The notes beneath the pieces were generated by a model. The model was not told where the DNA came from, made no database searches, and saw nothing but the letters and a program-made list of their open reading frames with translations. DNA of 63,798 nt, filler included, from Pelomyxa schiedti (taxonomy: Eukaryota > Protista > Evosea), in assembly GCA_020536535.1 (NCBI GenBank). It is 10 parts of 10 records of this genome, joined end to end, with 100 filler letters (N's around TTAATTAATTAA, not from the genome) between each part and the next. Parts side by side here need not be neighbours in the genome. Positions count along the whole stretch, not along the records: positions 1 to 19,240 come from JAHLWZ010000523.1; 9 more parts are not named here. One strand, given 5' to 3'. This document shows, piece by piece, positions 1-19,240 of the stretch (position 1 is its first letter; the number at the start of each line of letters is the position of its first letter). Both the position numbers and the translations under genes were made by a program.

Positions 1-12
1 ATCTTGGGGAGG

Positions 13-2018
13 ATGGCAGCGACACCGGTAGTACATTGGATGGGACAGGCGACGTTGAAGGTGGGAACGGATCTACACAAACAAAACAGGGTCAAGCTCA
101 TGGGCAGGTTCCGCGACGCGGCCAACCCTTGCCCTGTTAAATCACTTCTTTTCGTGAAGGGTATTTGTTTTTTTTTTTGCATAAAAATTTTTGTAGTTTT
201 TGTTGTGTTGACTTCACAATGCTTGCTGTTCGTTTTTAGCAACTTGTTGTAATCTTTTTGTGTAAATATGACACCGGGTGACAAAGAGAATAATTGCGAT
301 TGCAGGTGGAGATGATACTGCTATAAATGATAGTGATATCGACTACACTTTCAAGCAGGAGAGCACATTCCAATACTTATTTGGCGTTCGCGACCCCGGT
401 TGCATGGGAATCATCGATATGGCCTCCTCAAAGTCCATATTGTTCATGTCCCGCCCAAATCCTGCGTACCAAGCGATTTTGGGAAAGATTCAGGTAACCC
501 TGTGAATTAAAGGAAACTGTCTCAAGTTTCTACAGCCCCCATCATTCTATGTGGCCCGCTATGGAGTCGACGAAGTTAAGTATGTCGACGAAATCCCCGC
601 CTTTGTTGCTGAGTATGACCCTGATATCATCTACACAATGCATGGAGTCAACACTGACAGTGGAATTGTTGTTGCGGAGGCAACCTTTTCTGGAATCGCT
701 AAATACCATGTAACCAATCTAATTCTTAGCAATGAGTGATGACATAAAAAATAGGTGGACAAAGGCCGTCTGTTCCGTGAAGTATATGAGTGCCGCCTCA
801 CCAAGACCCCAGCCGAAATTGAGGTGATGCGCTATGTGGTCAAGGCTTCTGCAGAGGCTCACAAAGCGGTAACTAGGTTTTTTTTTACCACTGTTGGTCT
901 TACCTCCCAATTTTAAAGGTGATGAAAAGCTGTGCCCCTGGAATGATGGAATACCAGTTGGAGTCTTTATTCCTTCACCACATGTACTTCAATAGCGGTT
1001 GCAGGCACAGTGGTTACACACCCATTTGTGGGTCTGGCCCAAATTCTGCTGTTCTCCATTATGGACATGCTGGTGCACCTAATGACCGACAGATGCAAGA
1101 TGGTAAGGAACTCCAGTCTTCTATTCTTTTATTAAAAGCTCATAGGTGATCTGGTTTTGGTTGACATGGGTGCGGAATACCACTGCTATGATGGTGATAT
1201 TACATGCACCTTCCCTGTAAACGGCAGGTTCACAGCCGACCAACGCGATGTCTACGAGGTGAATTTCCTGTGCTCTTTCCAAGCAAAACTTAATGATGCA
1301 CCAGACAGTCCTTGCTGCAAATCGGGCAGTTGAAGAGAATATGAGGCCAGGAGTATCGTGGCCAGATATGCACAAGCTTGCCAATCGTGTTATTTGCGAA
1401 CAGCTCAAGCAACGTGGTTTCCTCAAAGTATTCCTTCTTTACATTCTTTGTGCTTCTTACAGTTATCAGGGAGATGTTGACGAGATGATGAAGGTTCACA
1501 TTGGCGCTCTTTTCATGCCCCATGGACTTGGTCATCTCCTTGGATTGGTTATTACCTTCTAAATTCACCCCTTAACTGACACTCGCTAAGGATACGCATG
1601 ATGTTGGTGGCTACCCAAGGGGGACAACGAGAAGCACGGCGCCAGGAGAGTCCCGGTACTTTTCTTATCTTCTTGTTATGACACCACTGACCGCTTTCCA
1701 GATTGAGGTGCGCTCGTCCCTTGGTTCCCGGTATGATTCTCACTGTAGAGCCTGGTGTATACTTCAACTCTTTCCTGCTCGAACCGGCATTTGAGGTTCC
1801 GCTTCTTCTCCTTCTACCACCGGTTTAAGTTCTAACATTCCCCACAGAACCCGGACCAAGCCAAATTCCTGGTTAAGGAAAAGCTGGTGGCGTTCATGAA
1901 CTTTGGAGGTGTCCGCATTGAGGACGATGTGCTCGTAACTGAAACCGGGTGTGAAATCCTGTCATGCGGCCTTCCTCGCACCCCAGCGGAGATTGAGGCC
2001 TTCATGTCCAAGTCCTAA
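13..2018 (+). CDS. PEPD: Xaa-Pro dipeptidase (prolidase, M24B), multi-exon
   Basis: Hand-spliced exons give [17 protein letters not shown] (like the PEPD N-terminus), [75 protein letters not shown] and [12 protein letters not shown]. Stop TAA at 2016-2018. The first intron boundaries are unresolved. Confidence 0.95.
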
Positions 2019-2204
2019 AATTATTGTGGTAAGCACCAGAGACCACACCGCAGTACCACAACACTGAAACAAATAAAACAAAAAACCAAAAAAAACCTCA
2101 TCTTCAAAATTTTGGACTTCCCTGTTTGGCGGGTGATAATTGGCTGGGAGAAGAGCACACCATAGTCCGTAACAACGTGGTGACTCACTTGCCATTGAAA
2201 GTCT

Positions 2205-3467
2205 TCAACAGTTGTTGCAAGATGGCTTGGTGTGATGAGATGTCGGTTGTGCATTGGCATCAGATTTTGCTGCGCTTTGTTGGCTTTGAGACTTCTGTGT
2301 TGGGTCTTTCAAGGGGACAACCTTGATGTTTTCTTCTATACCACCTATGGTGCTGATGGAGATAAGTGCCTGCCCAGAGAGAATCTCATAAATTGACAGT
2401 GTTTGATCAATTCTGTTGCATACAATTAGACACCCCCTCTCCACTTTGCATTGTGAGACTTCCAGTGGATTCTCTTGGGATAGGCAGAGTGAGTGTACCC
2501 TTCTTGTGGTTTCACGACACTCCCAGATTTCATAGAACATAGTAGAGCAGCTATAAACACAAAACATGGCCTCATTCACCTGAGAAACACCATCACAAAC
2601 GCATGTATGAAGTTCTGTAACTGTGGCTGTGCTCTCCTCCAGTGCAAAAACTTGTGAATGTTCCTCAAACGTTTTCACAATGAAAACATGGGAACCTGCT
2701 TTCCCCATAATGGCTACAGAGTCAGAAGTGATCTCACAAACCGTTGGAAAAGGGAGCTTTGTTCTGCTGGTTACATGCAAGTGCCCTGCAGAGAAGGAAC
2801 CTGCCACATCCACCAGAATGCATATAATGCATCTGCCTAAAGTGGATTCCTCAAACAGCACAACAAGAGCCTCATTTGGAGCCACCCTATTAAAGGACAC
2901 GCTCCTCACAACCAGATTCCGTGAATCCGCCACAGGTCCCTCCACCGGGACCGCCATTCTCTGGTAGTTCCCATAATGGCTCACCGGCGCCACGCGCAGT
3001 CTCACGCCCTCCGTTCCCTCAAAGGAGCTCATCACCCACACGCCGTTGTCTGCGTACCAATCGGTGCAGGCTAGATCATGTGAAGGTAGGTGTTCAGTGA
3101 CACCTCCAGGAGTCAGTCCGCACAATGGGGAGAATCCAAAGAGAACCCACTTGCGCCAACGTACTTGGACTGACAACACAGTCTCGGACAGCAGGAGGGC
3201 AGAAGTGTCCCACAATTGGCAGACGAGAGGCGCGCCGTGCATGGATAACGCACGCGCGGGCGACGCAGACCCGCAGCGCCGGTGGCAGACGCCAACGAGC
3301 AGGGCCATCAGCTGCGACCAAATTGTGGGAAACATAGTCACCATCAACTTGGCCCGGCCTTCGCCGCAAAAGGTGCCTTTTCGTTGCCACGGGAACGAAA
3401 TCGCTACGACCCCGCCGCCTTCGGGGCTCCCGAACAGATTCCAACACGACGTCGCTTGGCTCTCCAT
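2205..3467 (-). CDS. Orphan family A protein, complete and intronless
   Basis: Long ORF with first ATG at 3467. N-terminal motif WSQLMALLVGVCHRRCGSASPARAL and C-terminal IYEILSGQALISI, both shared with other copies in the window. Confidence 0.7.
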   Translation of the reverse strand: MESQATSCWNLFGSPEGGGVVAISFPWQRKGTFCGEGRAKLMVTMFPTIWSQLMALLVGVCHRRCGSASPARALSMHGAPLVCQLWDTSALLLSETVLSVQVRWRKWVLFGFSPLCGLTPGGVTEHLPSHDLACTDWYADNGVWVMSSFEGTEGVRLRVAPVSHYGNYQRMAVPVEGPVADSRNLVVRSVSFNRVAPNEALVVLFEESTLGRCIICILVDVAGSFSAGHLHVTSRTKLPFPTVCEITSDSVAIMGKAGSHVFIVKTFEEHSQVFALEESTATVTELHTCVCDGVSQVNEAMFCVYSCSTMFYEIWECRETTRRVHSLCLSQENPLEVSQCKVERGCLIVCNRIDQTLSIYEILSGQALISISTIGGIEENIKVVPLKDPTQKSQSQQSAAKSDANAQPTSHHTKPSCNNC

Positions 3468-3538
3468 CTTCAGCAGCTTCAGAGAAAAACTTTTTGGTTC
3501 CAACCGAAAAACAAACGGACAGTCCGGAAGGCACTCAA

Positions 3539-6020
3539 ATGTCTACGACGACAACGTCAACGGCGTCCACCGGGCTGGATGCAATGATTATGGGAAATGT
3601 TTTGCTGATGCTCACGCGACCCGCGAGGCTGGACAACAACACCACGAGGGGTGCGGCGCCGATCCCTGCGTGTCTCAAGCCAAATTTGCATGCTGTGTTC
3701 GTGGTCGCTCGTGTTTGTTCCGTACGTTGTGGTTTTTTTTTCCCCCGTGTAAAAAAAAGTAACTGTTATTATGGGACTGTATTTGTTTGTGTTTTTATTT
3801 GTCAAATATATATATATAATAGTTATTATATGAATATATGTATTAACTAAGCTCTCACTTCCGTTTCTAATAAAATGAGTGCAATATTTTCATTGAGTTG
3901 GACTTTGTTAGCGAGATATCTCCCAACGGTAGTAATGAGATGCCCAGGAGTGGAATAGGGCTTGCAGCTCGAACGCACTGTGGCAGATAATGTACCAGCG
4001 TGACTTTGGGCACTTCCCTCTGCCTGGCGCGGAGGAACCTCCTTCTGATTCCAACTGGAAGCAGATTTATAAGGACCGCTTATTCGGGACTTTTGTTGTT
4101 CATCTCACAACTGGAATTCCAGCCGACTCCCCAACGTATGGAACTGAAGATAAATACTGAAGATAAAGTTGGCAACCTCAATTGCACCCACTGACTTTTT
4201 CCATAGAATATCCCGGGAATTTTTCCAGCACTGGATGTTTTCGAAAAATAGATGCCCTGTCCACCTAGAAGTGTTTTCTGGGCTCCCCCCTGNNNNNNNN
4301 NNNNNNNNNNNNNNNNNNNNNNNNNNNNNNNNNNNNNNNNNNNNNNNNNNNNNNNNNNNNNNNNNNNNNNNNNNNNNNNNNNNNNNNNNNNNGCAACCTC
4401 AATTGCACCCACTGACTTTTTCCATAGAATATCCCGGGAATTTTTCCAGCACTGGATGTTTTCGAAAAATAGATGCCCTGTCCACCTAGAAGTGTTTTCT
4501 GGGCTCCCCCCTGCGTTTGGCGTTCGACCTCCAAGACAGCTTCCTGGAATCCAAATGGGGAAGAAAAAACCTGCTGTATGCGTTTCTTTTATATCCCAGT
4601 TTCTTCTTATTGCTGGGTGTCCTTACACCGAGGAAGACTTTGTTGAGGTTTGTCATTGATGTTTATTTGTGTTAGCTGACCCTTGTTTGATATGATAGAT
4701 GGGTCAAAAAATGGCCGAAAAGATATTTTTACCAGCGTTTGATGAGGATGACCCTGATGAAAGTGAAGAGAACAAGACTGTGCGTCATGTCTCTGCTCAC
4801 ATCGAAGATCATACTTTACTCACATTAAGTATTGAGGTTGATAACTAACAGCTACACTCGCTGTATAGCCGTAATTTATTTGTTCTGATCAAAGCTAGGT
4901 GCTTGCCAAGGATCCGATTGCCACTTTGATGAATCGGGCACGCAGCAAGCTTGTTAGTTTCAGTAGTTATGCACTCTCCGAAAGTGTCGGTGTCTTGCTT
5001 CACCCCATGTTCAAGTATGTCTTTCTATCAGATGGAAAAGAAAATCACAATTTGAAAGGACACTGAGGAAATACAATCGGCACCTCAAGAAAGCTATCTC
5101 CGGAAAGGGGAAAGCTACAACAGCCTGCTGGGATGGACAACTCAGCCAACGCTCCCTTTCCCGGCAAATAAAGGGGGAGTACCTGAACGCGTTTGGGTGC
5201 AAAACTGACTGGTACCCACCTCGTCGTCACTTTATCTTTTCACCAACAAGCATTCATTCTCAAAGGTCGAGTTCAGAAGTGTTGGAAGACCCCAGCTGCC
5301 TGAAACTCGCAAAATGTACCCGGGGTTGCACACAATGGAGTGTAGTATCACCAAACGGTTCAACAATCAACTGGGTATTTTCTCCACCGCATCAACTTCT
5401 GCTCTGGTCCATGTGCGTTTTTCCCCACCTTTTTAANNNNNNNNNNNNNNNNNNNNNNNNNNNNNNNNNNNNNNNNNNNNNNNNNNNNNNNNNNNNNNNN
5501 NNNNNNNNNNNNNNNNNNNNNNNNNNNNNNNNNNNNGTACCCGGGGTTGCACACAATGGAGTGTAGTATCACCAAACGGTTCAACAATCAACTGGGTATT
5601 TTCTCCACCGCATCAACTTCTGCTCTGGTCCATGTGCGTTTTTCCCCACCTTTTTAATACTAATAGTATTTCCCAACTCGAATTCTAAACAAATTATCTC
5701 TGCTAGTGTACTTGGTGAGGAGGACACCCTAGAGGACAAGTATGGAGTAAGCGGTTCAGACTTGGACCAACTCGAGGAGGCTTTCAGCAGGTAACAATTT
5801 GTAGTGGGTGGATATTCTTGACTGACCACCAAAACAGGGAACAACAAGCCACTGGCAGAACTGGTGACCACGACACTACTGTGTGTTACCCCCCACCCTA
5901 GGGAATACTATTCAACCTTATATTGAACACTAGGTGGAAGTTCTGCAGAGGGAGTTTGAAATTGACATTAATAAGTATGGTGATTCCGGAGCCTCTATTA
6001 CCGAAACCGACAACTCCTAA
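3539..6020 (+). CDS. F-box protein, multi-exon, C-terminal region unknown
   Basis: Exon 3539-3721 spliced to exon 3948 onward gives ...VFVVARVCS/EWNRACSSNALWQIMYQRDF, an F-box C-terminal consensus. Further GT-AG exons continue in frame (ISREFFQHW..., KSQFERTLRKY..., VEVLQREFEIDINKY...NS*). Two 100-N gaps are crossed. Confidence 0.6.
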
Positions 6021-6140
6021 ATCACTTTTTCTTTGTGTTTCTAATTATCGCCCTGTCTTCCAAGTTGGTTCTTCTCCATCACTGATTTTGATCGTCTTTT
6101 TGGAAGAACGAAAAACAAAAAGAAATTCGGCAGGGGAGTA

Positions 6141-8335
6141 ATGTCAGACACGATGCGGGACGATATTTTACAGAGGTGGTTGGACCAATGGCTAATAACA
6201 GATCCCAACACTGAGATCTGTGGATCGTGCGGATACCCCTCAGTCTCGCCGCCGCCTTCGCCGTCGTCGGCCGCGAAGACCAAGACGAAGTCTAAAAGGA
6301 GTGCCGGACGCGCCCATAATTACCGCACCAGCGAGGAGGATGCCCACAAGGAGCCCGAGGAGGAGCAGACCGTGAGGGTGGTGGGTGTGCGGGGCGTGGG
6401 GAACGCCAGGACCCGGGCGGACGTGTTCGAGAGGATTGTGGGACACTGCTTCGACGACGTGTGCGGGTACCCTACCGCCGCCGCCGCCGGCGGGGCAGCA
6501 GCGCGGACGACTTATGGGAGCGGCAGCAGAGCCTGGAGGTGGCTGGGAAAGTGGGTTGATGCAAGTGAAAAAGTGGCCCTGAGGAAAGGAGGATTCAGGG
6601 GAGATAGTGAAAAAGTGGTTACAATGGATCAACTGAAGAAAGTGGTGTCCCTGTCTTATGAGAGACTTTCTGCATTGGGTATATTTAAGGTTTGCACACT
6701 GAACGCCATGGAACTATTATTACAAATTCTATGGTTATTTTTTTAAAAATTCATCTCAACCAAAAAAGGGTGTGTCTATTTCTTTGGGAATGCCTTCTGA
6801 CTCTGAAAGCGATCGGGTGGAAGTACTTGTTGATGTAATTGAGAAGGGGTCACTTTCTCTTCAGATTGGGACAGGGCTTACCCAATCCGACCAATCTGGA
6901 AGTCTTCTAGACTTCGGGTAGGAATATTTTCCGTTTTTCAATTTACTTACAACTCGTTTAGGCGTGGTTCTTCCCTTATCAAGTCCGAGTTGCTCTACAG
7001 AAACGCCTTTGGTAGAGGTGAGGAGCTATCGTGTGGCGCTTGTTTTGGTGGTAGTACTGACGTTTCATTGCTGGGTGATATATTTGCCTCTCTGAAAAAG
7101 CCTTTTCTACACAACCCCAATGCTCATGCAGCTATTGTAGCCACTCGTTCCAATACAAATAACTCCGCTACTACCGGCACTGCTTTACAGACAAATGGCG
7201 TAGCTATGTCCATAGCTAATGATACTCACCTTCTACAGTAGTCAAATAAATATGTTATTAACTCACTGACAAATACCACAGATATGAACTTTCCCACCGG
7301 TACCTTATGCCGATGACCACAACTCCTCCTTTACCATATTCCACTCGTTTGCTGTGTGGCCATACACTCAAGTCTTGTGTGAGGCATGTCTGCCGTTTAT
7401 TTGACACCCGGGACAACAAGACTTCACCAACAAGTGGAATTGGTGCTATGAGTAATGTGGAGTTTTCTGGCGGCATCCTGGGAGGAAGTGTGAATTGTAT
7501 ACGTTGCAGTGGAGCTGCTCAGTTTGCTCTTCCGCTTGTCCGCATGCCAAGATCAGCCCCTACTCAACCAAGTGAGCCCCACCTCAGCCCTGAACCAGCT
7601 CCAAAGAAACCTGTGCTACTTGGTCTGGTTCTTGGAATGCGAAGTGGATTCCTTTTGCACAAGGGACATGCTGCTCCAATGGAAAAGTTCTTCATTAATG
7701 GTGTTATACTTGTACAAATTAATCCTTTTCTAACCTCTACAACAGGAGGTGGTGATGTGCGGGGATTTGATATTCTTAATCCCATAACTACAACGGCCCC
7801 TGTTGTGCCCATTCCCACCGCACCGCATCTCCCGCAGGATACAGCCGGCGGTTCTACTGCTCCCGGCCTTCTCTCACTTGGCGGGGATGCTTTTGGCTCA
7901 CTGGTTGCTGCCCTCCGCTTACACATTCCTCACCTTGAGCCGCTATGCACACATGTGTTCTTCAACACCGGGAACCTCATTAATCTCCACCACCCAACTC
8001 CTTTGCATCATCCCCTCCACCCCACATCCTCCTCAGCTTCTTCTTCTTCTTCTTCCTCACCCTTGTCATCCATGCCAACAACAGCACTCTCAACAATCAC
8101 AAGTTCACCTCATCATGCTGCTACCGGACTCAACGACAACAGGAATAGTGTGGCCTCAGCAGTGAAGGACCTGGTGCACAACACATGCAGCAGTGTTGGG
8201 ATTGGGCTGCTGTGGCCCATGTCTGAAGGTGCCCTTGAGCTCAACCTGTGCAAAACCCTTGGAGGACCAATGTCTCACCAGTACCGTTCCACAACAAGCA
8301 AACTGCAACTGTGCTTCTCCATGAACCTACTATGA
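6141..8335 (+). CDS. SAM50: Sam50 / Omp85-family outer-membrane beta-barrel assembly protein
   Basis: POTRA-like VRVVGVRGVGNARTR...LSALGIFK, then YRNAFGRGEELS, GHTLKS, FFINGGGDVRGF (after removing intron 7701-7745), LGGDAF, THVFFNTGNL, SVGIGL, LELNLC and terminal QLCFSMNLL. These motifs are collinear with Sam50. Confidence 0.9.
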
Positions 8336-9169
8336 ACTACCCACAATAATTTAAAAAGTTCTGGAAATTTTTTTCTTTTTGTTTTTTATGGGGGAGAATT
8401 CTGAAGAGGCCAAGGAAGCGCGTACGCTACACGACGCTCGGCATAGCGACTTAGCTTTTCCTTCACAAGACCAAATAACTCAAACGCAACGATACTTTCT
8501 TCAACACTCAATTTCTCAACCAATATAGAAACGGAGATCTTAGAAATGCTACGCAGGGGAATGGTGCCAAAGGTGTCAAGCTTAGCTTTGGTGAATCTAT
8601 CTCACTAGCCTCCGAGAACACGCGATTACAGTGTTTTGAAAAGTCGTGAAAAAATGTGGCAACTTTAGCGGCATTTCTTTACTCATCAGAGAACCCGCGA
8701 TTTTTAATTACGCATCGGGTTGCGGGCGTAACGACGATGGTGAAGAGTGACCACCGTGGAACGGTAACAGTGACACTGGAGATCTCACAGAAAAACGTAC
8801 ACATCGGTGCACGATGCACAGCCTCGCTTTGGCCCAATGTAGGCAACAAGCCCCCGGAAAGGCACCCCAACGCCCGCATCACAGACTAGCTGCCTTCCTC
8901 TGACCAGTACAATTGTTTTAGTAATGGTTTGTTTTCCGGTATGAAAAACTGTCCCGAAGCAAAGGAATATTTGCCTGAGACAGCACCACGCTTTGCGGGT
9001 GAAAACCGTTGAAGAGTGAGGTCTTGCGACCACCGAATTGTTCAAACGGGTAATTGGTGAGTTTTTAATTTTCTGTACCAGCGATTAAATAGCGGAAAAT
9101 CCTCCCCGACATTGTGGGAGGCTCTAAGGTGACCGAAGAGAACCATCAACTTAAATTTGTTTCTCCACA

Positions 9170-11327
9170 ATGACACTGGTGCGGGATGGGATTGTGGGTC
9201 TGTTTGGCCCAACTGGTGTTGGCAAAACAGCCCTCAAGGAGACGTAAGTTGTTTGGTTGTTGGGTGCACGTTCCCACAATTTGGTGTCGGCGACGCACCG
9301 TCAGTGCAATTGGTGTCCGGCATTGACAGTAGTTAGGTTTTGCAATGGGCATTGGAGTCCCTATGAGTACCAGGGCTCTTTGGAAATCAGTGTATTACCT
9401 GCGATTTTTTTTCTTTTTCTACTCCGCTATTCTTCTTACCAAAGGCAGTTCCGAAGGAAAGTTTCTTTTGATGGAACCGATGCAAACTTGGAGATTCTGG
9501 ATTGGTGTGCATGTTCTTTTATTGTCATAGAAAATGTAACTCAAACGATCCAAGTTCCATGGGGGACTATGCTGTATTTCGAGATGCACAGTAGAATATC
9601 TTTTTTTTTTTTAAACAGACCGAAATTAACGCTCTTTGTGCCAGTCTTAGAAGAACGAATGTTATTCTACTGTGCTTTTCACTTGCTGATAGAATAAGTT
9701 TTGTCGAAGCTGTGGAAGCGGCTTTCCAGTGTATAAGAAGATGCTGCGAGGTAGTTCTAACCATATTCCGAACTCTGCCTAGCAAAAGTTTTTAGGAGAC
9801 AATTATATTTTTAGTTGGCCTCAAGATGGATCTCGTGACTGAGGCTTGAAGAATTCTTTCACTATTGAGCGCTAATTTTATTGTAGGTTCCAGGCTCTTG
9901 TGTGACTTTTCAAGAAGGTGTTTCGGCAGCAACTGAAATCAAGGCGTATGGTTACTTTCAATGCAGGTTTGCGTTCTTCCAGTCTGGCATTGCTCTCATC
10001 TCTGTTGTTGTTTTGGAAAAAAGTTCCAAAACCTATGTAGGACTGGACAATCTCTTTGAGGAAGTCTGCAGAGCTGGAATATTTTCTGCTCCTGGCTCTA
10101 TTACCATACCCGACACTAAAAAGTCCGGCTTCTTTGGTTGGTTCTCCAAGAAGCCAACGACTAAATCCCCAGAAACGTGAGAATAGTTCCTCTTTTTTTT
10201 TAGCTTATTCACCACAGTCCCCACTGCGTTGTAAAAATATCACTCGCCACAATTATTCAACCAAAGGTTTCTCTGATCCCAAATGACATCTGGCTGCGTG
10301 TGTAATGAACAAATGAACACCAACCGCTAATAAAATACAGTTGTGCTGGAATACCTGGACTTATTAACACTCATCCGGCTTTCCCGCACATGCAAGCAAT
10401 TCTACCACCTTGCAAAAACAACCTTGGCAAGTGCAATGAGCAAGCCACACAATTTTTCTGGTTGTGCCAAGGTGCCCAGCTGGAAGAATACTTCATTCAC
10501 GTGGACACCAAATAAGAGGTTCCATGAATACACCTATTCTCCCGTAAAATACACTCCAACTTCCAGTCGCCGCAGGGTATAGGTTCCATTTTAAACATAT
10601 TAACTGACACTTACACTTACAGTCCGGTTCAAACGACCAATTTGTCTGCTTTGGGCCGGACTGCACAATTTTGATGTCAAATGGAAAACACTGCCTCATG
10701 AGGAACCTTGACGTTGGTGACAGTGTTCTTGCATACTACTATGATGGAGGCCATGGCCACTATACAGCACCGGCATTTGTTAAGTGCATTTGGAAGTGTA
10801 TAACCTGTTTTCTGAAGTATATCTAACTTTTTAAAACAAACAACAGGTGCCCGGTTCGAAAAACAATTCCACTGGTTGTTATTTACCAAAAATCAACCAC
10901 CACAGACACTATTCTCGAACTCACACCCGATCACCCCATACTCCTTCTCCATCATAATCAACTGCAGGAACAACAAAACTCTTCTCACCCCAATCCAAGC
11001 AACAACATTACAACCACAATCAGGAACTGGTGCCTGCCAACCAACCTGTGCCAACCACACATGGTTCACATTGAATATGTATACAACTTGGTCCTGGAAT
11101 CACACCAAGGTGCTGTAATAATACCACTATCACATGAGAACAAAGGATTGACCCGGCACAGCGGCCCCAAGTCCAAACCTGAACCTGAATCTGTTGCATG
11201 TTGCACACTTGGCATGAGTGTACCAGGACACCCTGATGATTGGTGGGGGACACACAGGGTCATAGAGTGGTTGGACTCCAGGCCTGATTTCCCTTATGTC
11301 ACATCACTCCCTCCAGACAACCCCTGA
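9170..11327 (+). CDS. Rho/Rac-like GTPase - F-box - Hint/Vint fusion protein
   Basis: Spliced model: GPTGVGKT (G1), FRRKVSFDGTDANLEILD, TNVILLCFSLADRISF, IFLVGLKMDL (G4), YFQCSSKT. Intron 10177-10217 joins this in frame to LIPNDIWLLVLEYLDLLTLIRLSRTCKQF (F-box). Then CFGPDCTILMSNG...LDVGDSV, LELTPDHPI, YVYNLVLES, CCTLG and WWGTHRVIEWL (Hint + Vint). Confidence 0.8.
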
Positions 11328-11603
11328 CACATCACTGTTTTAATGTAAATAATTACAGTATGGCTGCAGGACAGTGAATAACAAACAACAACAATCACAA
11401 TGACAAGTTAGAAAGGTCCAACAATGCACACACGGCAGAATAACCGCAGTACACACTTCATTGATCGCAGGTGGCGCACTTTGATCATTACCGGGGGGAG
11501 GCTGAGTGTCCAATGGCCGCGTCGTCAGACTTGTGGGTTTTGGGTTGGGCATACATAGCTGACAATACTATACTATCATACTAACTTTAAGTGTGTATGT
11601 AGC

Positions 11604-12415
11604 GACTACGTTATTAGACTCCGCGCGTGATGGTGACCCAGGCGTCGGCAAAAGTGCACTATTTTTTCCCTCTTCTTCCTCCCTCTCTTTTGTGTACTGA
11701 GTGACTTATACACTATTGTGTGTGGTAGGTTGTCTGATAATGCGTTTCGTGGTATTGTGACTCTGTATACAACAATAACTCATACATTCTTCGTACATCG
11801 ATTGCGCAGTGGTATGAACCATTGTTATTAACAAGTTGCAATTGACAAGGACTACGACTTTCCATGTTGCACAAGGACCGTTGGCGTGGATTTCGTGCGT
11901 ATCGTATTCTTCTTTTCTCTTTTACTATTCTTATTTATTTTCTTGTTTTTTTCTAATCTCTAATAATTTGTTCATTGAAAATAGATTCACAATAGTTACA
12001 CGTCCATGTACATTTACTGTAATTAATACAACTGACAAAAAATAACTTACTTTTGATTGGAAGTTCTGAGAACTGAAAGCTTTGAAAATGTTACGCTTTG
12101 GCTACATGAGATAGTGAACAGTTGTACAACAGTCCCTCCGATAATACTTGTTGGCACCAAGGTGAAACCTCCCTCATTTTTTCTTTCTCATTTAAATCAC
12201 TTTCAACCTTGCACTTGTATTTGTTTCAGTTGGACATGGCCACCCATAATTTGTTCTGGTGTGTTTCACCGATTAATCACACAATCAACTAAGCACAACA
12301 CAGGGAGACATCATCCAAGGATGGAACAAATGTGGAGGGGGCCATCATGTCACTCCTCACTTCCATCGAGAGGATGAGGAGTGCACACAACCAAGTTCAC
12401 TGCTGGGCAGACTAA
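11604..12415 (+). pseudogene. Degenerate Rab1-like small GTPase
   Basis: Exon remnants GDPGVGKS, CLIMRFV, TVGVDF, SFENVTLWLHEI, IILVGTK and ETSSKDGTNVE. There is a frameshift/stop just before G1 and no recognisable WDTAGQ exon. Confidence 0.65.
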
Positions 12416-12476
12416 CTCAGTGGTTCTGACAAACAGGAACTTCTTTTTATGAACATTTTCATAACATGTTTTGAAG

Positions 12477-15250
12477 TTAGTGGCTGGTGTTTTTATTGCA
12501 CCCAGGTGTTTTGGTATCACAGTTGTTGACACTCTTGGTTGTGGGAACTGTGCCGTAATTCCTCAGTGGTGTTGATGGATTTACTATGCTATCGTTGCAG
12601 CAGTACTCCTCTGGTCCCATGGGTGTTTTGGGATCGATATGCACATCTGTCAGTTCCTGGGTGTTTACTTTGTTGGAATCTCGATCCCCGAGTGCACTGA
12701 TGCCCTCAAGCAAGCAAATGTTACTTTCACCTTGAAAGATTGCTCCGCAGGTAGTAGTAGTCGTAGTATATGTTGGTGGATGTCGAGTTATGAGATGCTG
12801 GCGTTTGTCGGCACAATAGGTGGTCAGAATTGTCACAATTTCAGTGAATGTGGGTCTGACTTTGGGATCTTGGGCCCAGCAGCGAACAAGCTATAGGATA
12901 AGGAATTAATGTAAAGTAAGATGGAGTTTGTACAAACAGACCAACGTTTCCATCTCCAGGTCTGCCTCGTGTGGAATTGATGGCCGGTACTGCTGTTTTG
13001 CTGCCTCGATAAACCATTGATGGCGTTGTTCCACAGGGATATTCTGCAGCTCTTTGCTGAATGGATGATCACCATGGTTGAGTAGCACCCAAAGCACCAT
13101 AGAAAATGAAAACACATCATATTGTTCTGGGTAACTTCAGCAACAGAATTACAAAAAAAAATTGTTTCTTACGGGTGTATTCTGCACCAGATACAATAAC
13201 CTCTGGGGCCTGTGGTGGAGTGAGCTTTACTGTATCTTCAGTGAAGAAAGTACAAGTAAAATGGTACCGAAAATACAGGAGTTGTGCCGGCAGTAGAATG
13301 ACATGAAGAAGAATGCTTCAAGTCAATTGCACTCCCAAAATCACAAATCTTACAGCAAAAATTTTTATCCACAAGAATATTTTCAGGCTACAATAATGTT
13401 AAGCATGCTGCATCTGAAAGCCGGTATTACCTTGAGATCCCTGTGGATCAAATTCTTTGAGTGAACAAAGGCCATTCCAGTGGCAACATCCAATGCCATT
13501 CTGACCCTTTCACACAATTCCAAAGAGAGTTCTTTCTTATTGCTCAATACTTTCCGCAAGCTGCCCTTCTCTGCAAAATCAAGAACAATTCCAAGTTCAT
13601 TTGTAATTTTTGTCCAACCCCATAAATTGATAATATTGCGGTGCCAAAGTTGTCCAAGACGCTGGAAGGCTGGAAGTACGAAAAGTGGGGTGAAAGGTTT
13701 GTATACCAAAATTTCGTTTTTTTCTTCCCCTCTTGGTTGTGCCTTTAAAATCTTCACAGCTACTTGGTGGTTTCTTCCTTTCTTGTCTTTGAAGGCATTA
13801 AATCGCAAGAGAGAATGAGATGGCTCCCACCAATTGTTGCAGAGTATACAGTCCCATAGCTGCCTGAACCAATTATCTTTAAGTTCTGAAGCCCACGAAC
13901 TTCCTGTAAAATAGATGAATCAACAGGCGGTGTAGTGTAGTGTTAAGGAAAACCTTGAATGCAGGATCCTTTGTAATGTCCTCCTCACAACACTGTGCAA
14001 ATGACAAACCTTTAAAAGAGAAAAAAAAGCAATTAAAGGCACAGACCTCGCATGGCTTTTGTTTGTGCAGGACAAAAACAGCAACCACAATTGCATAACA
14101 AGGCATCACCTCCTTTGCCATTGAGGAATAATTATTCGCCTTCCCCGACATGGGTGACATTGGCCATATAGCTGTGACAAGGTCATTCACTGAAATAAAC
14201 TGTAAGCCAGGGTTCTCAACTGGAGAGTCATACGTGCTCTATAGAGACATCCAATACTTATTAAGACTAAAAGTACTAAGAGAATCTTTGACTTCTTCTC
14301 AACTAGTTCCTGGTAGCATTGCCGGGTTATCTACAGGTGTTAATTTATATATACTCTAGCATGGAGGGATCACCCGATATCCAGCGAATGCCACAATGAG
14401 GAAAGAAATTGTAACTACCAGGAGAAGTGTATCTGTGAAGCAGTTGATCAACAAGGAACCGGGGATACAAAAGTACTGTCTAAGACATCCACGGGATCTG
14501 AGCACTCGCAGTAAAAATTTGAGCTGTCACTGTGGTTGTGTGCTTTCCTCTTAAGGTTTCCAGTGACAAGCGCAATGACCGTGACAAGTACATATGTGAA
14601 GATATTCACACCGAGGCTTGTATATCTCCACTTCCACGGTACTCCTCCTTTGTTCACAGCTCTATCTGAGGGAGAGTAAAACCAAATATACAAATCCAAG
14701 AAAAGGTGGGACAAACCGCTTGGATGAAACTTTACATAAATGGCCAAAAGAATGCACCAAACAGCAGAGCAACAACTGCAGGTGGCCAAGTGACTGACAA
14801 GTCCAAATTCAGAATCCCCTGCATATGACAGCTAAGTGTTGTGAGTGATTGGTAAATTCTGAGAAATTGAAAGTTTTAAGGAAAAAAACCAGTTTAACCA
14901 AAAAAAAAAAAAAAAGCCCAAAGTCACTACACAAAAAACAATAACCACTACAACAGCCATATGGCTACCAAGCGAAGCGAGCAAACGGAAGCCACAAAAA
15001 CCAACGACAGAGCAGGCAGCCCAAGTCCTCTCCGGCCAACCATCTTCCAGCCGTGGGCGAATGCAAGTCCGCAAAGCAGCAACAGCAGGCCATATGTGCC
15101 CATCAAGCAGTAGTTGTAGTACAAGTCCACGAGGTCAATCGCAGCAGAACTCTCTGTGCTGCCTCTCTGGGAGGCATTTGACAACGAAGAAGTGGAAGAA
15201 CGCGAATAATAATAACGCAGCTTCGATTTCATATAATATCCTGCTGCCAC
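12477..15250 (-). CDS. Seven-transmembrane (GPCR-like) domain fused to a TKL protein kinase
   Basis: Kinase motifs IGSGSYGTV, VAVKIL, HRDLK/PENIL, CDFG, APE, DVFSF and CWAQDPKVRPTF. Upstream exons splice to give seven hydrophobic segments, the last being KEVMPCYAIVVAVFVL. Confidence 0.8.
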
Positions 15251-15601
15251 CCCTGATTTTTTTACGATTTGGCGTTCTCTCGCGCGGCCGCATCGCCTTT
15301 AAAAACACCACCACTTTTACAATAACGACACCGAAAAGTGGCAACCAACAGTGCAAAACCGCGAACTCACTTGCTCAACTTGGAGGTGCCACGACGCGCA
15401 CAGGCACAAGGCACCCTCAGGGTCTCAGAGAGAAAAGGCCCCAGGCTTGAACCAAGTTGGAGCAGTCCTTGTTCTGCTAACAGCACTTCGGGATTGATGC
15501 ACGATCAAAGGGAATTTGTGATGATGGTCATGATCACGCTGAATCTTTGAGAATGAAGCGGCTGGAGTACCACTCCAGAATTCGGTTGCCTGCTGATCAT
15601 C

Positions 15602-15953
15602 ATGACAGGTCTTGGTGGCAAGTTCTGGGAAGTCACAATTCCTGAAAACGCACTGTACTCACCTGAAGAGCGTGGCCACAATCCACTTGACAATGACTGT
15701 GATGCACGGGGACCGCGGTGCACGAAGAACTGTGTCGGAATTCACTGGAAATGTCTGGTGTGTTTTTGTTGCCAAGCTTCGACTGGTGAACTTATTCACA
15801 AGTTCAACTAGATTTGTCAATTCTATGACATGTGCAAGGCCTGTGAACAGTACCGAGTTCTCTACTGTAAATACTTCACCCACCATACAGTGATCATTTT
15901 TTAACCTAGTTACCCACAGGGGGCACAACTTGACACACCCTGAAACTATATGA
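15602..15953 (+). CDS. Small ZZ-type zinc-finger protein (5' end uncertain)
   Basis: Splicing gives CDARGPRCTKNCVGIHWKCL/ICQFYDMCKACE...HRGHNLTH, which fits the ZZ finger Cys/His pattern. Confidence 0.45.
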
Positions 15954-16072
15954 TTGCAAGTATGCACACACTTGACATATCACCCAGGTTTACCTCAGAC
16001 AATGGTGTCTCTGATGCTGACAACGATTTTAACTTATCATAATTGAGGATAACCACGAAACGACGTTGCATC

Positions 16073-17291
16073 ATGGCCCTTGTAAGGGACTTGTGAGTTT
16101 TTAGTTAGTTAGCAACTGGTTTGTTGACTGACAATGTGTACCGAAGTGATTGCGTGATTAACGTGCGTCTGCTCGGCGATTACGGCGTGGGAAAAAGTGC
16201 ATTTTTCTTTTTTGATATCACAAAGAAAACTTACTTTGTTTGTAGGTTGCTTGCTCCTCCGTTTTGTGGTGTGTGTATGCATCTTTGTGCACAAACAAAC
16301 TGCAGACTATTTTGCGTTTTCAGGAGGACCAATTCCTATCAACCCACATAGCCACCATTGGCGTGGATTTTGTGCGTATTTTATGCGTTGTGCATTCCAT
16401 TTACCACGAGTCCGTTCTCCCACCCTCTCACCAATCATGTTTTTCAAACACAGCAAGTCAGGACAGTCCTGGTGGAATCGAAGATAATTCGAATACACAT
16501 AGTAAGTCCTTTTTTCCTCCCTATCTCCAGGAATACACTCACCTGATGAGATGAAAGTGGGATCTTCTGAATACAGAAAGGTTATTTTGTTGTTGTTATT
16601 CCATAACAACTCAACATGAAATTAGAACTAGAAACTGTACAGTGCAGATATACTGAAATAATTATCCCAATTAACCCTTTGCATTGGAAGTTTACCAGAG
16701 ATGTGACGGACTCATTGTATTGTAGTGTGTACCCCACCCTGTGAAGTACCCAAACCCACCATCAGTATCAGTGATATCACTGATATTAGCAGCTTCCACG
16801 GCGTTTCCAGTTGGTTGGGCGAAGTAGGGCGCTATTTTACAACAACCCCTCAGATAATTCTTGTTGGAACCAAGGTTGGAACTTCCTTCATTTTGTTCAT
16901 TTAATATGAATATCCGAATCTTTCTCTTGCATTTACATCAATCTCCCTGACCAATACCGCTTTCAAAAAATCAAAATTTTACTTATCCCACTCACATTAC
17001 TTCAGCTGGCTTGGCCACCACAAACCGGCAAGTCGAATTCAGCGACGCCAAACAGTTTGCTGACGAAAAAGGGCTCCAGTTGTGGTGCTTTCCTGTAAAA
17101 ATTACTGATAATCACTCCAACTAACAACACAACACAGGGAGACATCATCCAAGGATGGAACAAATGTGGAGGAGGCCATCATGTCACTCATCACTTCCAT
17201 CAAGAGGACCAAGGACTCTGATGAGGAACCAACCAGCACAACAACCCAACAAAGTTTGCTAGTGAAACTCTCTCATTGGTGTGGGTTGTAG
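16073..17291 (+). pseudogene. Divergent Rab1-like GTPase with an apparent 1-nt frameshift
   Basis: Exons give MALVRDFDCVINVRLLGDYGVGKS, CLLLRFV, ATIGVDF, WDLLNTER, IILVGTK and ETSSKDGTNVEEA. The exon near 17006 reads CTGGCTTGG where CTG GAC TTG is expected. Confidence 0.65.
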
Positions 17292-17329
17292 TTGTAGTTC
17301 CAAGAACAGTAATCAGACTGATTCACAAA

Positions 17330-18050
17330 TTAATCCCTGTTTTTGTTTTTGCTGGGTGTTGTGTTGATGGAACCGTAGTCCAACATCTTTACAGGCACAG
17401 TTGTTTGCCTAACTGATACAGATGGGTCTGTCACAGTTGGGCTTGAGAAACTACAACAGTCTTCATCATCCTCTGCTTTTGGTGCTGGATAAACAGCATC
17501 ATCCCCAAGTTCACAAAGTCCAACAAAAACCAGGTTCCTCTCTGGTTTTTGTGCTTCACAGAGAGTGGTGACAGAGATTCTGACCCTAATGCGCTTTGAA
17601 AGTACCGAACTTACAGTATCCAATACTTTCTGCAAGCTGCCTTTTGCAGCAAGATCAAGAACAATCCCCATCCCATGCTTTGGGGATTCAGTCCACTAAG
17701 AGGGGACCCACACTACAAGGGGAAGTGTATCTGTGAAGTATTGTCTGAGACGGACCCAAGATTGTAAAAGTACCATCTAAAACATCCACCTAAAAATGCT
17801 GCCAGGTGACTCACCACTCCGAACACAGAGTCCCCAAATCCAGAGTTATAAATAGGGGCATAGGACACCTACAGGAAATAAATGATTCACCAGGCAAACA
17901 AAAAAGCACATCAAACAAACAAACAAACAAACAAACAAACAAACAAACAAACAAACAAACAAACAAACAAACAAACAAACAAACAAACAAACAAACAAAC
18001 AAGCAAGCACTCATACCAAGCGAAGAACACAAGGGAAGCCACAAAAAACA
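17330..18050 (-). pseudogene. Internally deleted paralog of the 7TM-TKL kinase
   Basis: GIVLDLAAKGSLQKVL matches GIVLDFAEKGSLRKVL at about 13560. Nucleotide blocks at 17715-17740 and 18010-18050 match 14420-14445 and 14960-15005. Confidence 0.65.
17912..18002. repeat. (AAAC)n microsatellite
   Basis: About 22 tandem AAAC units seen directly. Confidence 0.98.
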
Positions 18051-18115
18051 ACGCGGTCATTTAGTGTTTTTTTCCACCAAGTTGGGGATCGGACCTTTTC
18101 CTCGAAAAAAACATA

Positions 18116-18469
18116 ATGATGGTCACATCGTCACTTGGTGGTATCGGTGTCCCATACTCAATCGGGGAGATGAAAAACCTCAAAAAGATACGTAGTCGTA
18201 CTGGGCAAGCTGTTGTTGTCACACCACCACCACAAGGAACAACAAACGGAACTGAAACGACCGCAACAGCAACAGCAACCGCAACGAGAGTTACAGCAAT
18301 GACAGGGCAATGGACAATGAGGGACCAGGTGATGGGGCTGGTTGCGGGAACACACCCTCGCTGCGGTGCGAACGGGCCGCTGTTGCTGATGCTGCGGAGG
18401 AATTCCTGGTTCGACGGTACGCTTGTGGTGAGGCTCCTGTGGGGGTGGCTTATGGATCACTCGAGGTTC
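18116..18469 (+). CDS. Orphan family A, N-terminal fragment cut by a gap
   Basis: Motif MRDQVMGLVAGTHPRCGANGP...LLWGWLM. Confidence 0.6.
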
Positions 18470-18569
18470 NNNNNNNNNNNNNNNNNNNNNNNNNNNNNNN
18501 NNNNNNNNNNNNNNNNNNNNNNNNNNNNNNNNNNNNNNNNNNNNNNNNNNNNNNNNNNNNNNNNNNNNN

Positions 18570-19240
18570 CCCACCTCAGCCCTGAACCAGCTCCAAAGAA
18601 ACCTGTGCTACTTGGTCTGGTTCTTGGAATGCGAAGTGGATTCCTTTTGCACAAGGGACATGCTGCTCCAATGGAAAAGTTCTTCATTAACGGTTATACT
18701 TGTACAAATTAATCCTTTTCTAACCTCTACAACAGGAGGTGGTGATGTGCGGGGATTTGATATTCTTAATCCCATAACTACAACGGCCCCTGTTATGCCC
18801 ATTCCCACCGCGCCGCATCTCCCGCAGGATACAGCCGGCGGTTCTACTGCTGCTCCCGGCCTTCTCTCACTTGGCGGGGATGCTTTTGGCTCACTGGTTG
18901 CTGCCCTCCGCTTACACATTCCCCACCTTGAGCCGCTATGCACCCATGTGTTCTTCAACACTGGGAACCTCATTAACCTCCACCACCCAACTCCTTTGCA
19001 TCATCCCCTTCACCCCACATCCTCCTCAGCTTCTTCTTCTTCCTCACCCTTGTCATCCATGCCAACAACAGCACTCTCAACAATCACAAGTTCACCTCAT
19101 CATGCTGCTACCGGACTCAACAACAGGAATAGTGTGGCCTCAGCAGTGAAGGACCTGGTGCACAACACATGCAGCAGTGTTGGGATTGGGCTGCTGTGGC
19201 CCATGTCTGAAGGTGCCCTTGAGCTCAACCTGTGCAAAAC
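18570..19240 (+). repeat. SAM50: Near-identical second copy of the Sam50 3' half (allele or recent paralog)
   Basis: Matches 7579-8258 with SNPs, 3-nt-multiple indels in coding sequence and a 2-nt deletion confined to the intron. Confidence 0.9.

Follow-up and report, generated by a model that had tools for sequence, protein, structure and literature searches.

A Pelomyxa schiedti gene predicted to join a degenerate Rac-derived GTPase domain, an F-box and a Vint-type HINT domain

The window analysed here is a stretch of 63,798 nucleotides (nt) from the anaerobic free-living archamoeba Pelomyxa schiedti (assembly GCA_020536535.1), made of ten parts of ten records joined by filler. Positions 1-19,240 correspond to contig JAHLWZ010000523.1 (19,240 nt), and at 9170-11327 on its plus strand lies a gene predicted to encode, in a polypeptide of 525 amino acids, a degenerate Rac-derived small-GTPase domain, an F-box and a C-terminal Vint-type HINT domain. 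The GTPase and F-box parts are very probably fused in one polypeptide through removal of a 41-nt intron at 10177-10217. The gene is already called in GenBank (KAH3761524.1, “hypothetical protein Pelo_6648”, 544 amino acids; P0029 below), with coordinates and a GTPase/F-box joint identical to those proposed here. We regard it as reasonably likely, taking all parts of the account together, that the product is a cytosolic precursor which cleaves itself through its Vint domain to give a receptor of a Skp1-Cul1-F-box (SCF) ubiquitin ligase carrying a Rac-like module.

The joint between the two halves was inspected base by base. The GTPase frame ends with ...KKPTTKSPET and is followed by a TGA at 10178-10180, the stop named in the original prediction. 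This TGA lies within a GTGAGA donor (10177-10182), and together with the CAG acceptor at 10215-10217 the donor delimits a pyrimidine-rich intron (34% GC) that would stop the frame if retained. At the level of sequence the proposed splice holds: removal of the intron gives ...KSPET|PHCVVKIS...IPNDIWLLVLEYLDLL, leading into the F-box in frame, and the spliced product (...SPET|PHCVVKISLATIIQPKVSLIPNDIWL) is followed by a 43-nt intron and then by the remainder of the F-box. The F-box exon has, as had been claimed, no ATG of its own after the in-frame TAG at 10201-10203; its frame is open only from 10204 and contains no methionine, and the first methionine of exon 10 comes after the F-box. The size of the 41-nt intron is compatible with those of the ten other introns of the gene (43-93 nt; nine GT-AG and one GC-AG). 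Furthermore, four paralogs that are 33-68% identical (P0001, P0007, P0008 and P0037) have a counterpart of this intron, 39-45 nt long, that agrees in position and in phase (phase 2). Exon phases correspond across the five genes, each of which consists of 11-13 exons, and in none of them does a methionine precede the F-box within the open frame.

Evidence at the RNA level came from three single-cell RNA runs belonging to the P. schiedti genome study, to whose contigs all statements on RNA of this gene refer. These contigs cover 10218-11366 and contain the joints 10297|10341, about 10576|10623 and 10795|10847, so the F-box-Vint half is transcribed and spliced. The first letter of one contig is precisely that at 10218, immediately past the acceptor, with no extra letters before it, as is expected where a de Bruijn contig breaks because spliced and unspliced upstream sequences merge. 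Spliced-leader trans-splicing at 10218 was considered and dropped, since the contig has no extra letters there; to our knowledge none is known in Amoebozoa. Towards the 3′ end, a TAAATAAT element, a plausible poly(A) signal, and the ends of RNA contigs lie near 11340-11366. The conserved intron, the lack of a methionine, the contig start at 10218 and the purifying selection described below all lend indirect support to the earlier proposal of one gene for GTPase, F-box and Hint.

The corrected gene model (Table 1) starts with the ATG at 9170, is open in translation throughout its 12 exons and has eleven introns of 41-93 nt, ten of them GT-AG and one GC-AG. According to the genome paper (PMC8887013), P. 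schiedti has 7.4 introns per gene, 98.4% GT-AG and 1.6% GC-AG; its Augustus models were refined with PASA/EVM and its transcriptomes were single-cell Smart-seq2, and the paper makes no mention of an F-box or a GTPase. The model departs from KAH3761524.1 at an in-frame 57-nt GT-AG intron, 9392-9448, which the public entry retains as coding (VLPAIFFLFLLRYSSYQRQ). The 19 amino acids that it would encode are missing in every paralog, so its coding status was rejected and the true product is most likely of 525 rather than 544 residues. Alternative boundaries for exons 4 and 5 (9555-9573 and 9619-9750) were rejected in favour of the public 9555-9590 and 9645-9750, which give the spacing from switch II to β-4 seen in the paralogs and in Rho proteins. 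Exon 6 has an apparent GC donor at 9844 (GAG|GCTTGA) that retains the residues VTE; a GT donor at 9835, 9 nt upstream, would lose them. An exon end at 9834 was rejected, as the end at 9843 agrees with P0001, where VTE is encoded with a normal GT donor; no RNA contig covers this donor site. The searches described below used P0029, paralog P0001 and single exons as queries in place of the spliced 525-residue protein.

A second whole-gene copy was found in JAHLWZ010001902.1 (L006; 2749 nt), which is 94% identical to 8217-8388 and 8928-11312 and would represent either a haplotype or a recent duplicate. The indels between the copies all fall in predicted introns, with the exception of one in-frame 3-nt indel, and the exons have diverged by 3.3% compared with 9.0% for the introns. 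The intron 10177-10217 itself differs by 7.3%, against 2.6% and 5.0% in the flanking exons. The ratio of nonsynonymous to synonymous divergence (dN/dS) is 0.25 in the GTPase, 0.18 in the F-box plus linker and 0.53 in the Vint part, all on small counts, and in this sequence comparison all three parts show the mark of purifying selection. The second copy is annotated only from MLRVGLKMDL onward (P0003, 336 amino acids) although its GTPase exons are present, and several of the RNA contigs match this copy rather than that at 9170-11327.

The GTPase-like domain was recognised by Pfam Ras (PF00071) at 63.7 bits in P0029 (cut-off 21.6), with 53-128 bits in the paralogs. Measured against the Ras-superfamily consensus, neither the switch I threonine of G2, nor DxxGQ in G3, nor [NT]KxD in G4 is intact. 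G3 reads LEILDCSMGDY across the intron 9505-9554, with both the Gly and the Gln of DxxGQ gone, confirming the DCSM that had been read in place of DTAGQ; P0037 alone among the paralogs retains DTMGQ. In G4 the Lys and Asp are kept, and the Asn/Thr position is invariably Leu in the family. The loss of the switch II Gly-Gln and of the G4 Asn, together with Ser at the switch I Thr, suggests that the domain is probably non-hydrolysing, in line with the deficiency predicted from its degenerate switch II. The retained P-loop and the G4 Lys and Asp, with a dN/dS of 0.25, suggest nucleotide binding without cycling, so that the domain is probably nucleotide-bound.

No CAAX box is present at the end of the GTPase part, where the tail (IFSAPGS...KSPET) lacks cysteine, or at the end of the whole protein (...SLPPDNP), as had been noted from the start. 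The usual place of the Rho hypervariable region and CAAX box is taken by the conserved basic-aromatic motif KKSGFFGWFSKKP, which in paralogs reads KK(S/P)G(F/L)F(G/S)(W/F)FSK; that it might bind membrane is only a guess.

The description of this domain as Rho-like appears right in terms of descent, and did not stand in terms of the domain itself. The Rho insert helix is missing, with about 26 residues between LKMD and CSS as in Ras, and when aligned to Rac1 the query supplies 159 residues against 168 of Rac1, a difference of 9. Comparison with the PDB gave 68.9 bits for Rap1b, 65.9 for KRas and 63.6 for Rac1, and with scores so nearly equal a Rho-like character cannot be read from the domain alone. 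In a BLASTP search the best match outside the subfamily was the Rac domain of paralog P0036 (97 bits, 35% identity), compared with at most 79 bits for other Rac/Cdc42 domains, these being fusions. The P0036 GTPase is a textbook Rac, with 197 bits to Rac1, WDTAGQEDYDRLRPLSYP, DTAGQ and the Rho insert, and it has the derived motifs VGL.xDL and AYGYFQCS in common with the protein studied here. The simplest reading of these sequences is that the domain is a Rac which decayed after its incorporation into an F-box protein.

The F-box was detected by PF00646 (33.8 bits, cut-off 20.5) and PF12937 (31.3 bits, cut-off 24.3). It shows the pattern LP..IW...L..L....L...VCK.(W/F) and is kept in all paralogs.

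The C-terminal part was matched by Pfam Vint, and more weakly by Hint, both with single exons and with whole paralogs. Across 20 Vint domains from Pelomyxa and the cryptophyte Rhodomonas, the invariant residues comprise the Cys (Cys1) and Gly of VCFGP, T-P-D-H-P, the Trp of CIW(K/R)C, W..P, the Asn of a YN motif, W186, P202, and one Cys and one Pro of CCTLGM..PG..D..WG. An AlphaFold2 model of the domain, built from this 20-domain alignment, reached a mean predicted local distance difference test score (pLDDT) of 79.2 and a predicted template modelling score of 0.74. Its top Foldseek match was 8R2C, the crystal structure of a Tetrahymena Vint domain (E 3.4e-7, template modelling (TM) score 0.72 by target), followed by BIL domains, Hedgehog 1AT0 and inteins. 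Likewise, the family profile matched 8R2C at E 3.2e-12, including a C-terminal CCTLG-like motif, and Hedgehog at 2e-4 with Cys1 and TP.H aligned. The 8R2C authors are said to call part of the Vint domain an adduct recognition region. The protein ends 20-30 residues past the last Vint motif and there is no C-extein, so the domain is not an intein. No VWA or Vwaint domain was found in any family member at E ≤ 0.01. Vint was defined in VWA-Vwaint-Vint proteins, some of them with a U-box (U-box-VWA-Vint), and these were expected to be processed intracellularly (Burglin 2008; PMC2362128).

The gene belongs to a family numbering a dozen paralogs or more, which the original prediction did not mention, just as it did not mention the existing annotation. 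When the last exon served as query for an exhaustive phmmer search, 28 proteins were returned, and a word-based search with P0029 returned 12; all members with GTPase, F-box and Vint together are from P. schiedti. The Ras(PF00071)-F-box-Vint(PF14623) arrangement is found in P0029 with its near-copy P0003 and in P0001, P0004, P0005, P0007, P0008, P0010, P0013, P0037 and P0038; judged from the predicted proteins, the three-domain architecture is conserved in at least 11 paralogs. P0018 (KAH3756351.1, 844 amino acids) combines Ras and F-box with a partial Vint, in which VCFGP is present, and a DUF4403 (122 bits), and could represent either a model that merges two genes or one more architecture; P0039 has Ras and F-box only. 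In P0036 (KAH3744275.1), P0040 and P0041 a Kelch propeller lies between GTPase and F-box to give Rac-Kelch-F-box-Vint, and a 1,761-nt RNA contig (SRR23919877) encodes the Kelch-F-box-Vint part of P0036 as a single open reading frame. The same arrangement without Vint occurs in P0049 (Pelomyxa), P0051 (a complete Trinity open reading frame, EukProt) and P0055 (a JGI contig). Rac-BTB, Rac-BTB-U-box, Rac-RING and Rac-Kelch-BTB proteins are numerous in Amoebozoa and other protists, and in Pelomyxa and Rhodomonas the same Vint subtype is found behind ankyrin repeats (P0002) or behind N-termini of no assigned domain.

In the account that we favour, the 41-nt intron is removed so that GTPase and F-box would stand in one polypeptide, and the 525-residue precursor would be made in the cytosol with the Rac-derived GTPase-like domain, the basic-aromatic tail, the F-box, the linker and the C-terminal Vint domain in this order. 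An N-to-S acyl shift would then take place at Val316-Cys317, with Cys317 attacking the Val316 carbonyl and Thr392 and His395 assisting, and the thioester would be resolved by water, which is simplest, or by a small nucleophile, freeing a 316-residue Rac-like-F-box fragment from a 209-residue Vint. The F-box would dock this fragment on Skp1/Cul1, and the locked GTPase-like domain would act as a substrate-recruiting or regulatory module of the ligase; in the Kelch paralogs the propeller would act alongside it. Cleavage could serve in activation, in release from an inhibitory Vint, or in transfer to a nucleophile. By descent, the gene would go back to a Rac-Kelch-F-box(-Vint) ancestor, its GTPase having decayed and its Kelch propeller having been lost. 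Vint self-cleavage, Skp1 binding and nucleotide binding are in each case functions that we infer from sequence.

Several observations weigh against this account. Among the RNA contigs none lies on 9170-10217, that is, on exons 1-8 and the joint 10176|10218, and a search for transcript-assembly open reading frames spanning the junction (P0029:150-330) found none; a lack of 5′ coverage is expected of 3′-biased Smart-seq2 data. The gene models of the paralogs were produced by the same pipeline and are thus not fully independent. With Leu for Asn in G4 and a disrupted switch II, the GTPase-like domain might be unable to bind nucleotide at all. The Vint score of P0029 for PF14623 is 24.8 bits, under the Pfam cut-off of 27 (31-54 bits in paralogs), and it is the Vint part that has the highest dN/dS (0.53, on small counts). 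Finally, in the structure prediction named in the original prediction as a check, the full-length AlphaFold2 model, made for paralog P0001 from a 10-sequence alignment, was poor (pLDDT 54); it was kept out of the fold search and allows no interdomain contacts to be inferred.

The lack of contigs upstream of 10218, with coverage confined to 10218-11366, and the position of the TGA directly on the donor would also be consistent with two genes, the first for an independent Rho-like GTPase that lacks a CAAX box and stops at 10178-10180, and the second for the F-box and Vint parts. We consider this very improbable, since only 37 nt lie between the stop and the next exon, no methionine precedes the F-box here or in the four paralogs, and intron position and phase are kept in paralogs down to 33% identity. 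Moreover, no A-tail or loose end was seen near 10200 in the RNA contigs, while the plausible poly(A) signal and a contig end are near 11366, and the genome paper describes Smart-seq2 single-cell libraries, of which a 5′ coverage gap is to be expected (PMC8887013). Regulated retention of the intron, by which both a GTPase-only protein (...SPET) and the fusion would be made, is compatible with the favoured account. The stop is formed at the donor itself both here and in P0001, and an RNA contig (X1, 10218-10500) keeps the next intron, 10298-10340, so unspliced forms do exist in the libraries. However, in three other paralogs reading would continue for 8-36 codons before a stop, so that the immediate stop is not conserved, and pre-mRNA or DNA may account for introns kept in single-cell libraries; such regulation appears distinctly unlikely.

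For the C-terminal half, it is conceivable, if unlikely, that the protein is not cleaved at all, Vint having lost catalysis to become the substrate-binding domain with the GTPase-like domain as regulator. Vint lies C-terminal to the F-box, the place of WD40, LRR or Kelch in ordinary F-box proteins, and its sub-threshold score in P0029 and its dN/dS, the highest of the three parts, point the same way. Set against these are the invariance of Cys1, of the Thr and His of TxxH and of the flanking Gly and Pro over 20 sequences from two supergroups, which is the pattern to be expected of an active HINT, and the Kelch paralogs, in which a propeller for substrate binding is already in place at the opposite side of the F-box. 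The original prediction had offered a different speculation, that, as in Hedgehog, a sterol or other lipid might become attached to the Rac-like-F-box fragment and anchor it to membranes in place of prenylation. The missing CAAX box, a HINT thioester chemistry that permits transfer to an alcohol or amine, and the title and fold of 8R2C, which show extra C-terminal elements in Vint, would be in its favour. The domain is, however, Vint-type and not Hog-type; the sequence past Cys1 can be aligned in full with the Tetrahymena Vint structure, leaving no separate sterol-recognition region, and nothing extends beyond the Vint fold (158 amino acids from Cys1 to the end in P0040, the shortest member). 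The position aligned to the cholesterol-activating, general-base Asp of Hedgehog (Asp46/Asp303; D46 of 1AT0) is Lys/Arg, in a profile alignment of moderate reliability, Val rather than Gly precedes Cys1, and the basic-aromatic motif could bind membranes without lipid. Sterol or lipid attachment of the Hedgehog kind is thus not supported and appears highly improbable. Within the account of Vint self-cleavage, a bolder variant, which we would call a long shot, is that the thioester ligates the fragment through Val316 to a lipid head-group or to a lysine or hydroxyl of a partner protein. If this were true, an SCF receptor would be covalently anchored or conjugated without E1/E2 enzymes or prenyl transferases, a cytosolic process comparable to Hedgehog cholesteroylation and to the proposed BIL-mediated ubiquitin-like conjugation of ciliate BUBL loci, and the repeated retention of HINT behind CAAX-less Rac domains in the Pelomyxa lineage would be explained.

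Comparison with known systems places the gene closest to its own Rac-Kelch-F-box-Vint paralogs (P0036, P0040 and P0041), with the same order of GTPase, F-box and Vint, VGL.xDL and AYGYFQCS, at 31% identity. Those proteins have a canonical Rac and a Kelch propeller, whereas in the gene at 9170-11327 both the propeller and the catalytic switch II are gone; the Rac-Kelch-F-box proteins outside Pelomyxa (P0051, P0055) differ in lacking Vint. The parallel drawn earlier with RhoBTB and Dictyostelium RacA proved apt, given the many amoebozoan Rac fusions to BTB, BTB plus U-box, RING and Kelch plus F-box. In RhoBTB, RacA and the amoebozoan Rac-BTB-U-box proteins, a Rho-family domain without a working cycle or CAAX box is likewise joined to a cullin-adaptor or E3 module, although the adaptor of RhoBTB and RacA is a BTB domain (Cul3) and here an F-box (Cul1/Skp1) with an extra HINT, and the homology is confined to the GTPase.

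A GTPase fold inside a cullin-RING substrate receptor is also found in FBXO4 and in Rab40 (Rab plus SOCS box); the substrate domain of FBXO4 has a small-GTPase fold, and RhoBTB works with Cul3, Rab40 with Cul5 and FBXO4 with Cul1. The nearest clusters in a protein atlas were FBXO4-like and Ras plus SOCS-box proteins, at low scores. In FBXO4, however, the F-box is N-terminal to the GTPase-like domain, and both FBXO4 and Rab40 lack a HINT domain and are likened here by feature, not by specific sequence.

As for the HINT domain, the VWA-Vwaint-Vint proteins (PMC2362128) and 8R2C are of the same type by Pfam, profile and fold, are cytosolic and in some cases carry a U-box E3 module; their cargo is VWA plus Vwaint instead of Rac-like plus F-box, and identity to 8R2C is about 16%. 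The Hog domain of Hedgehog (1AT0) has the HINT fold, Cys1, TP.H and the GD.V strand in common with the present domain, and presumably the N-to-S acyl shift, whereas the Vint domain here lacks the sterol-recognition region, differs at Asp46 and before Cys1, and is not part of a secreted protein. The BIL domains of ciliate BUBL loci (6TMM, 6Y75) were the second-best fold matches and likewise represent HINT on ubiquitin-system cargo, but they flank ubiquitin-like domains and carry a C-terminal Asn, and the fold match is weak (TM 0.4-0.5).

A full-text literature search found no paper combining F-box, Hint and GTPase in this sense, and for Vint it returned only Burglin 2008 and plant Vwaint annotations. 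What is new is a domain architecture assembled from known parts, with a lineage-specific expansion, and not a new kind of element, the gene itself being already in GenBank as hypothetical. Should the proposed steps be true, Cul1 would be a third cullin system to have taken up Rho-family domains, beside Cul3 in RhoBTB and, for Rab, Cul5 in Rab40, and the product would be a natural ubiquitin-ligase receptor matured by HINT autoprocessing. It would also offer a tractable cargo for Vint domains, which are still poorly understood, with a dozen natural variants from canonical Rac to decayed pseudo-GTPase. The public gene model is corrected at the retained intron 9392-9448. No long-standing question is opened by these data, and beyond the domain architecture all is inference.

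Table 1. Coordinates of the gene at 9170-11327 of the window, its exons and its predicted domains and motifs
Feature	Position	Strand	Basis
Whole coding region, 12 exons, 525 amino acids (corrected model)	9170-11327	+	Threading of P0029, paralog comparison
Exons 1-4	9170-9243, 9337-9391, 9449-9504, 9555-9590	+	Corrected model
Exons 5-8	9645-9750, 9796-9843, 9887-9966, 10024-10176	+	Corrected model
Exons 9-12	10218-10297, 10341-10576, 10623-10795, 10847-11327 (stop 11325-11327)	+	Corrected model
Degenerate Rac-derived small-GTPase domain (residues 1-~172) plus tail, exons 1-8	9170-10176	+	Pfam Ras, family alignment, PDB comparison
P-loop (G1), GPTGVGKT	9206-9229	+	Sequence; kept in full-length paralogs
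Switch I, ...GSLE (Ser for Thr)	9368-9391	+	Sequence
G3, DCSMG, intron-split	9500-9564	+	Sequence
G4, LKMD	9820-9831	+	Sequence
G5, CSSK, intron-split	9962-10030	+	Sequence
Conserved basic-aromatic motif, KKSGFFGWFSKKP, at the usual Rho hypervariable/CAAX place	10118-10156	+	Family alignment
41-nt intron, phase 2, GTGAGA...CACAG	10177-10217	+	Sequence; homologous introns in paralogs
F-box (IPNDIWLLVLEYLDLLTLIRLSRTCKQFYHLA), split by intron 10298-10340	10276-10414	+	Pfam F-box; joint 10297|10341 in RNA
Linker of ~60 amino acids (W.YPG..KG.SWKN.SF.W.P) and basic stretch (SSRRRSGSNDQF) up to the predicted cleavage site	10415-10643	+	Family alignment
Vint-type HINT domain, low-complexity loops between motifs	10644-11324	+	Pfam, alignment, AlphaFold2, fold match; joints ~10576|10623 and 10795|10847 in RNA
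VCFGP, predicted scissile bond Val316|Cys317	10644-10658	+	Alignment
TPDH motif	10923-10934	+	Alignment
CCTLGM..PG..D..WG motif	11199-11249	+	Alignment

Just upstream of the gene, a short and very abundant RNA of 113 nt was observed on the minus strand at 8946-9058. Letters of the template-switch oligo place its 5′ ends at 9058 and 9040, and at the other end an A-tail that is absent from the genome is attached after 8946. Its contigs have a depth of 172-185, compared with about 10 for the GTPase-F-box-Vint gene. The predicted fold (-36.5 kcal/mol, z -3.84) shows a long terminal hairpin followed by genomic T5, and a TATTTAAT box lies ~30 nt upstream of the RNA. It gave no Rfam match even at E ≤ 1, and Rfam gave no match in the stretch studied. 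It may represent a small structured RNA that is not yet classified, in divergent orientation to the gene, whose ATG is 112 nt away.

Further upstream, a Ser/Pro-rich frame and its antisense frame at 7262-8332 are found again at 18611-19146, near the contig end, and have the appearance of a segmental repeat whose copies are separated by about 11.5 kb. A gene annotated with an Omp85 domain (6141-8335) contains the first of these copies. Downstream, two small Ras-family genes (11864-12415 and 16073-17262, plus strand) are accompanied by a protein kinase gene (12477-15232, minus strand) and by further kinase-like frames at 17333-17695 (minus strand), which suggests a duplicated GTPase-kinase pair. 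A 12-nt tandem repeat at 17880-18010 encodes (TNKQ)n in one frame.

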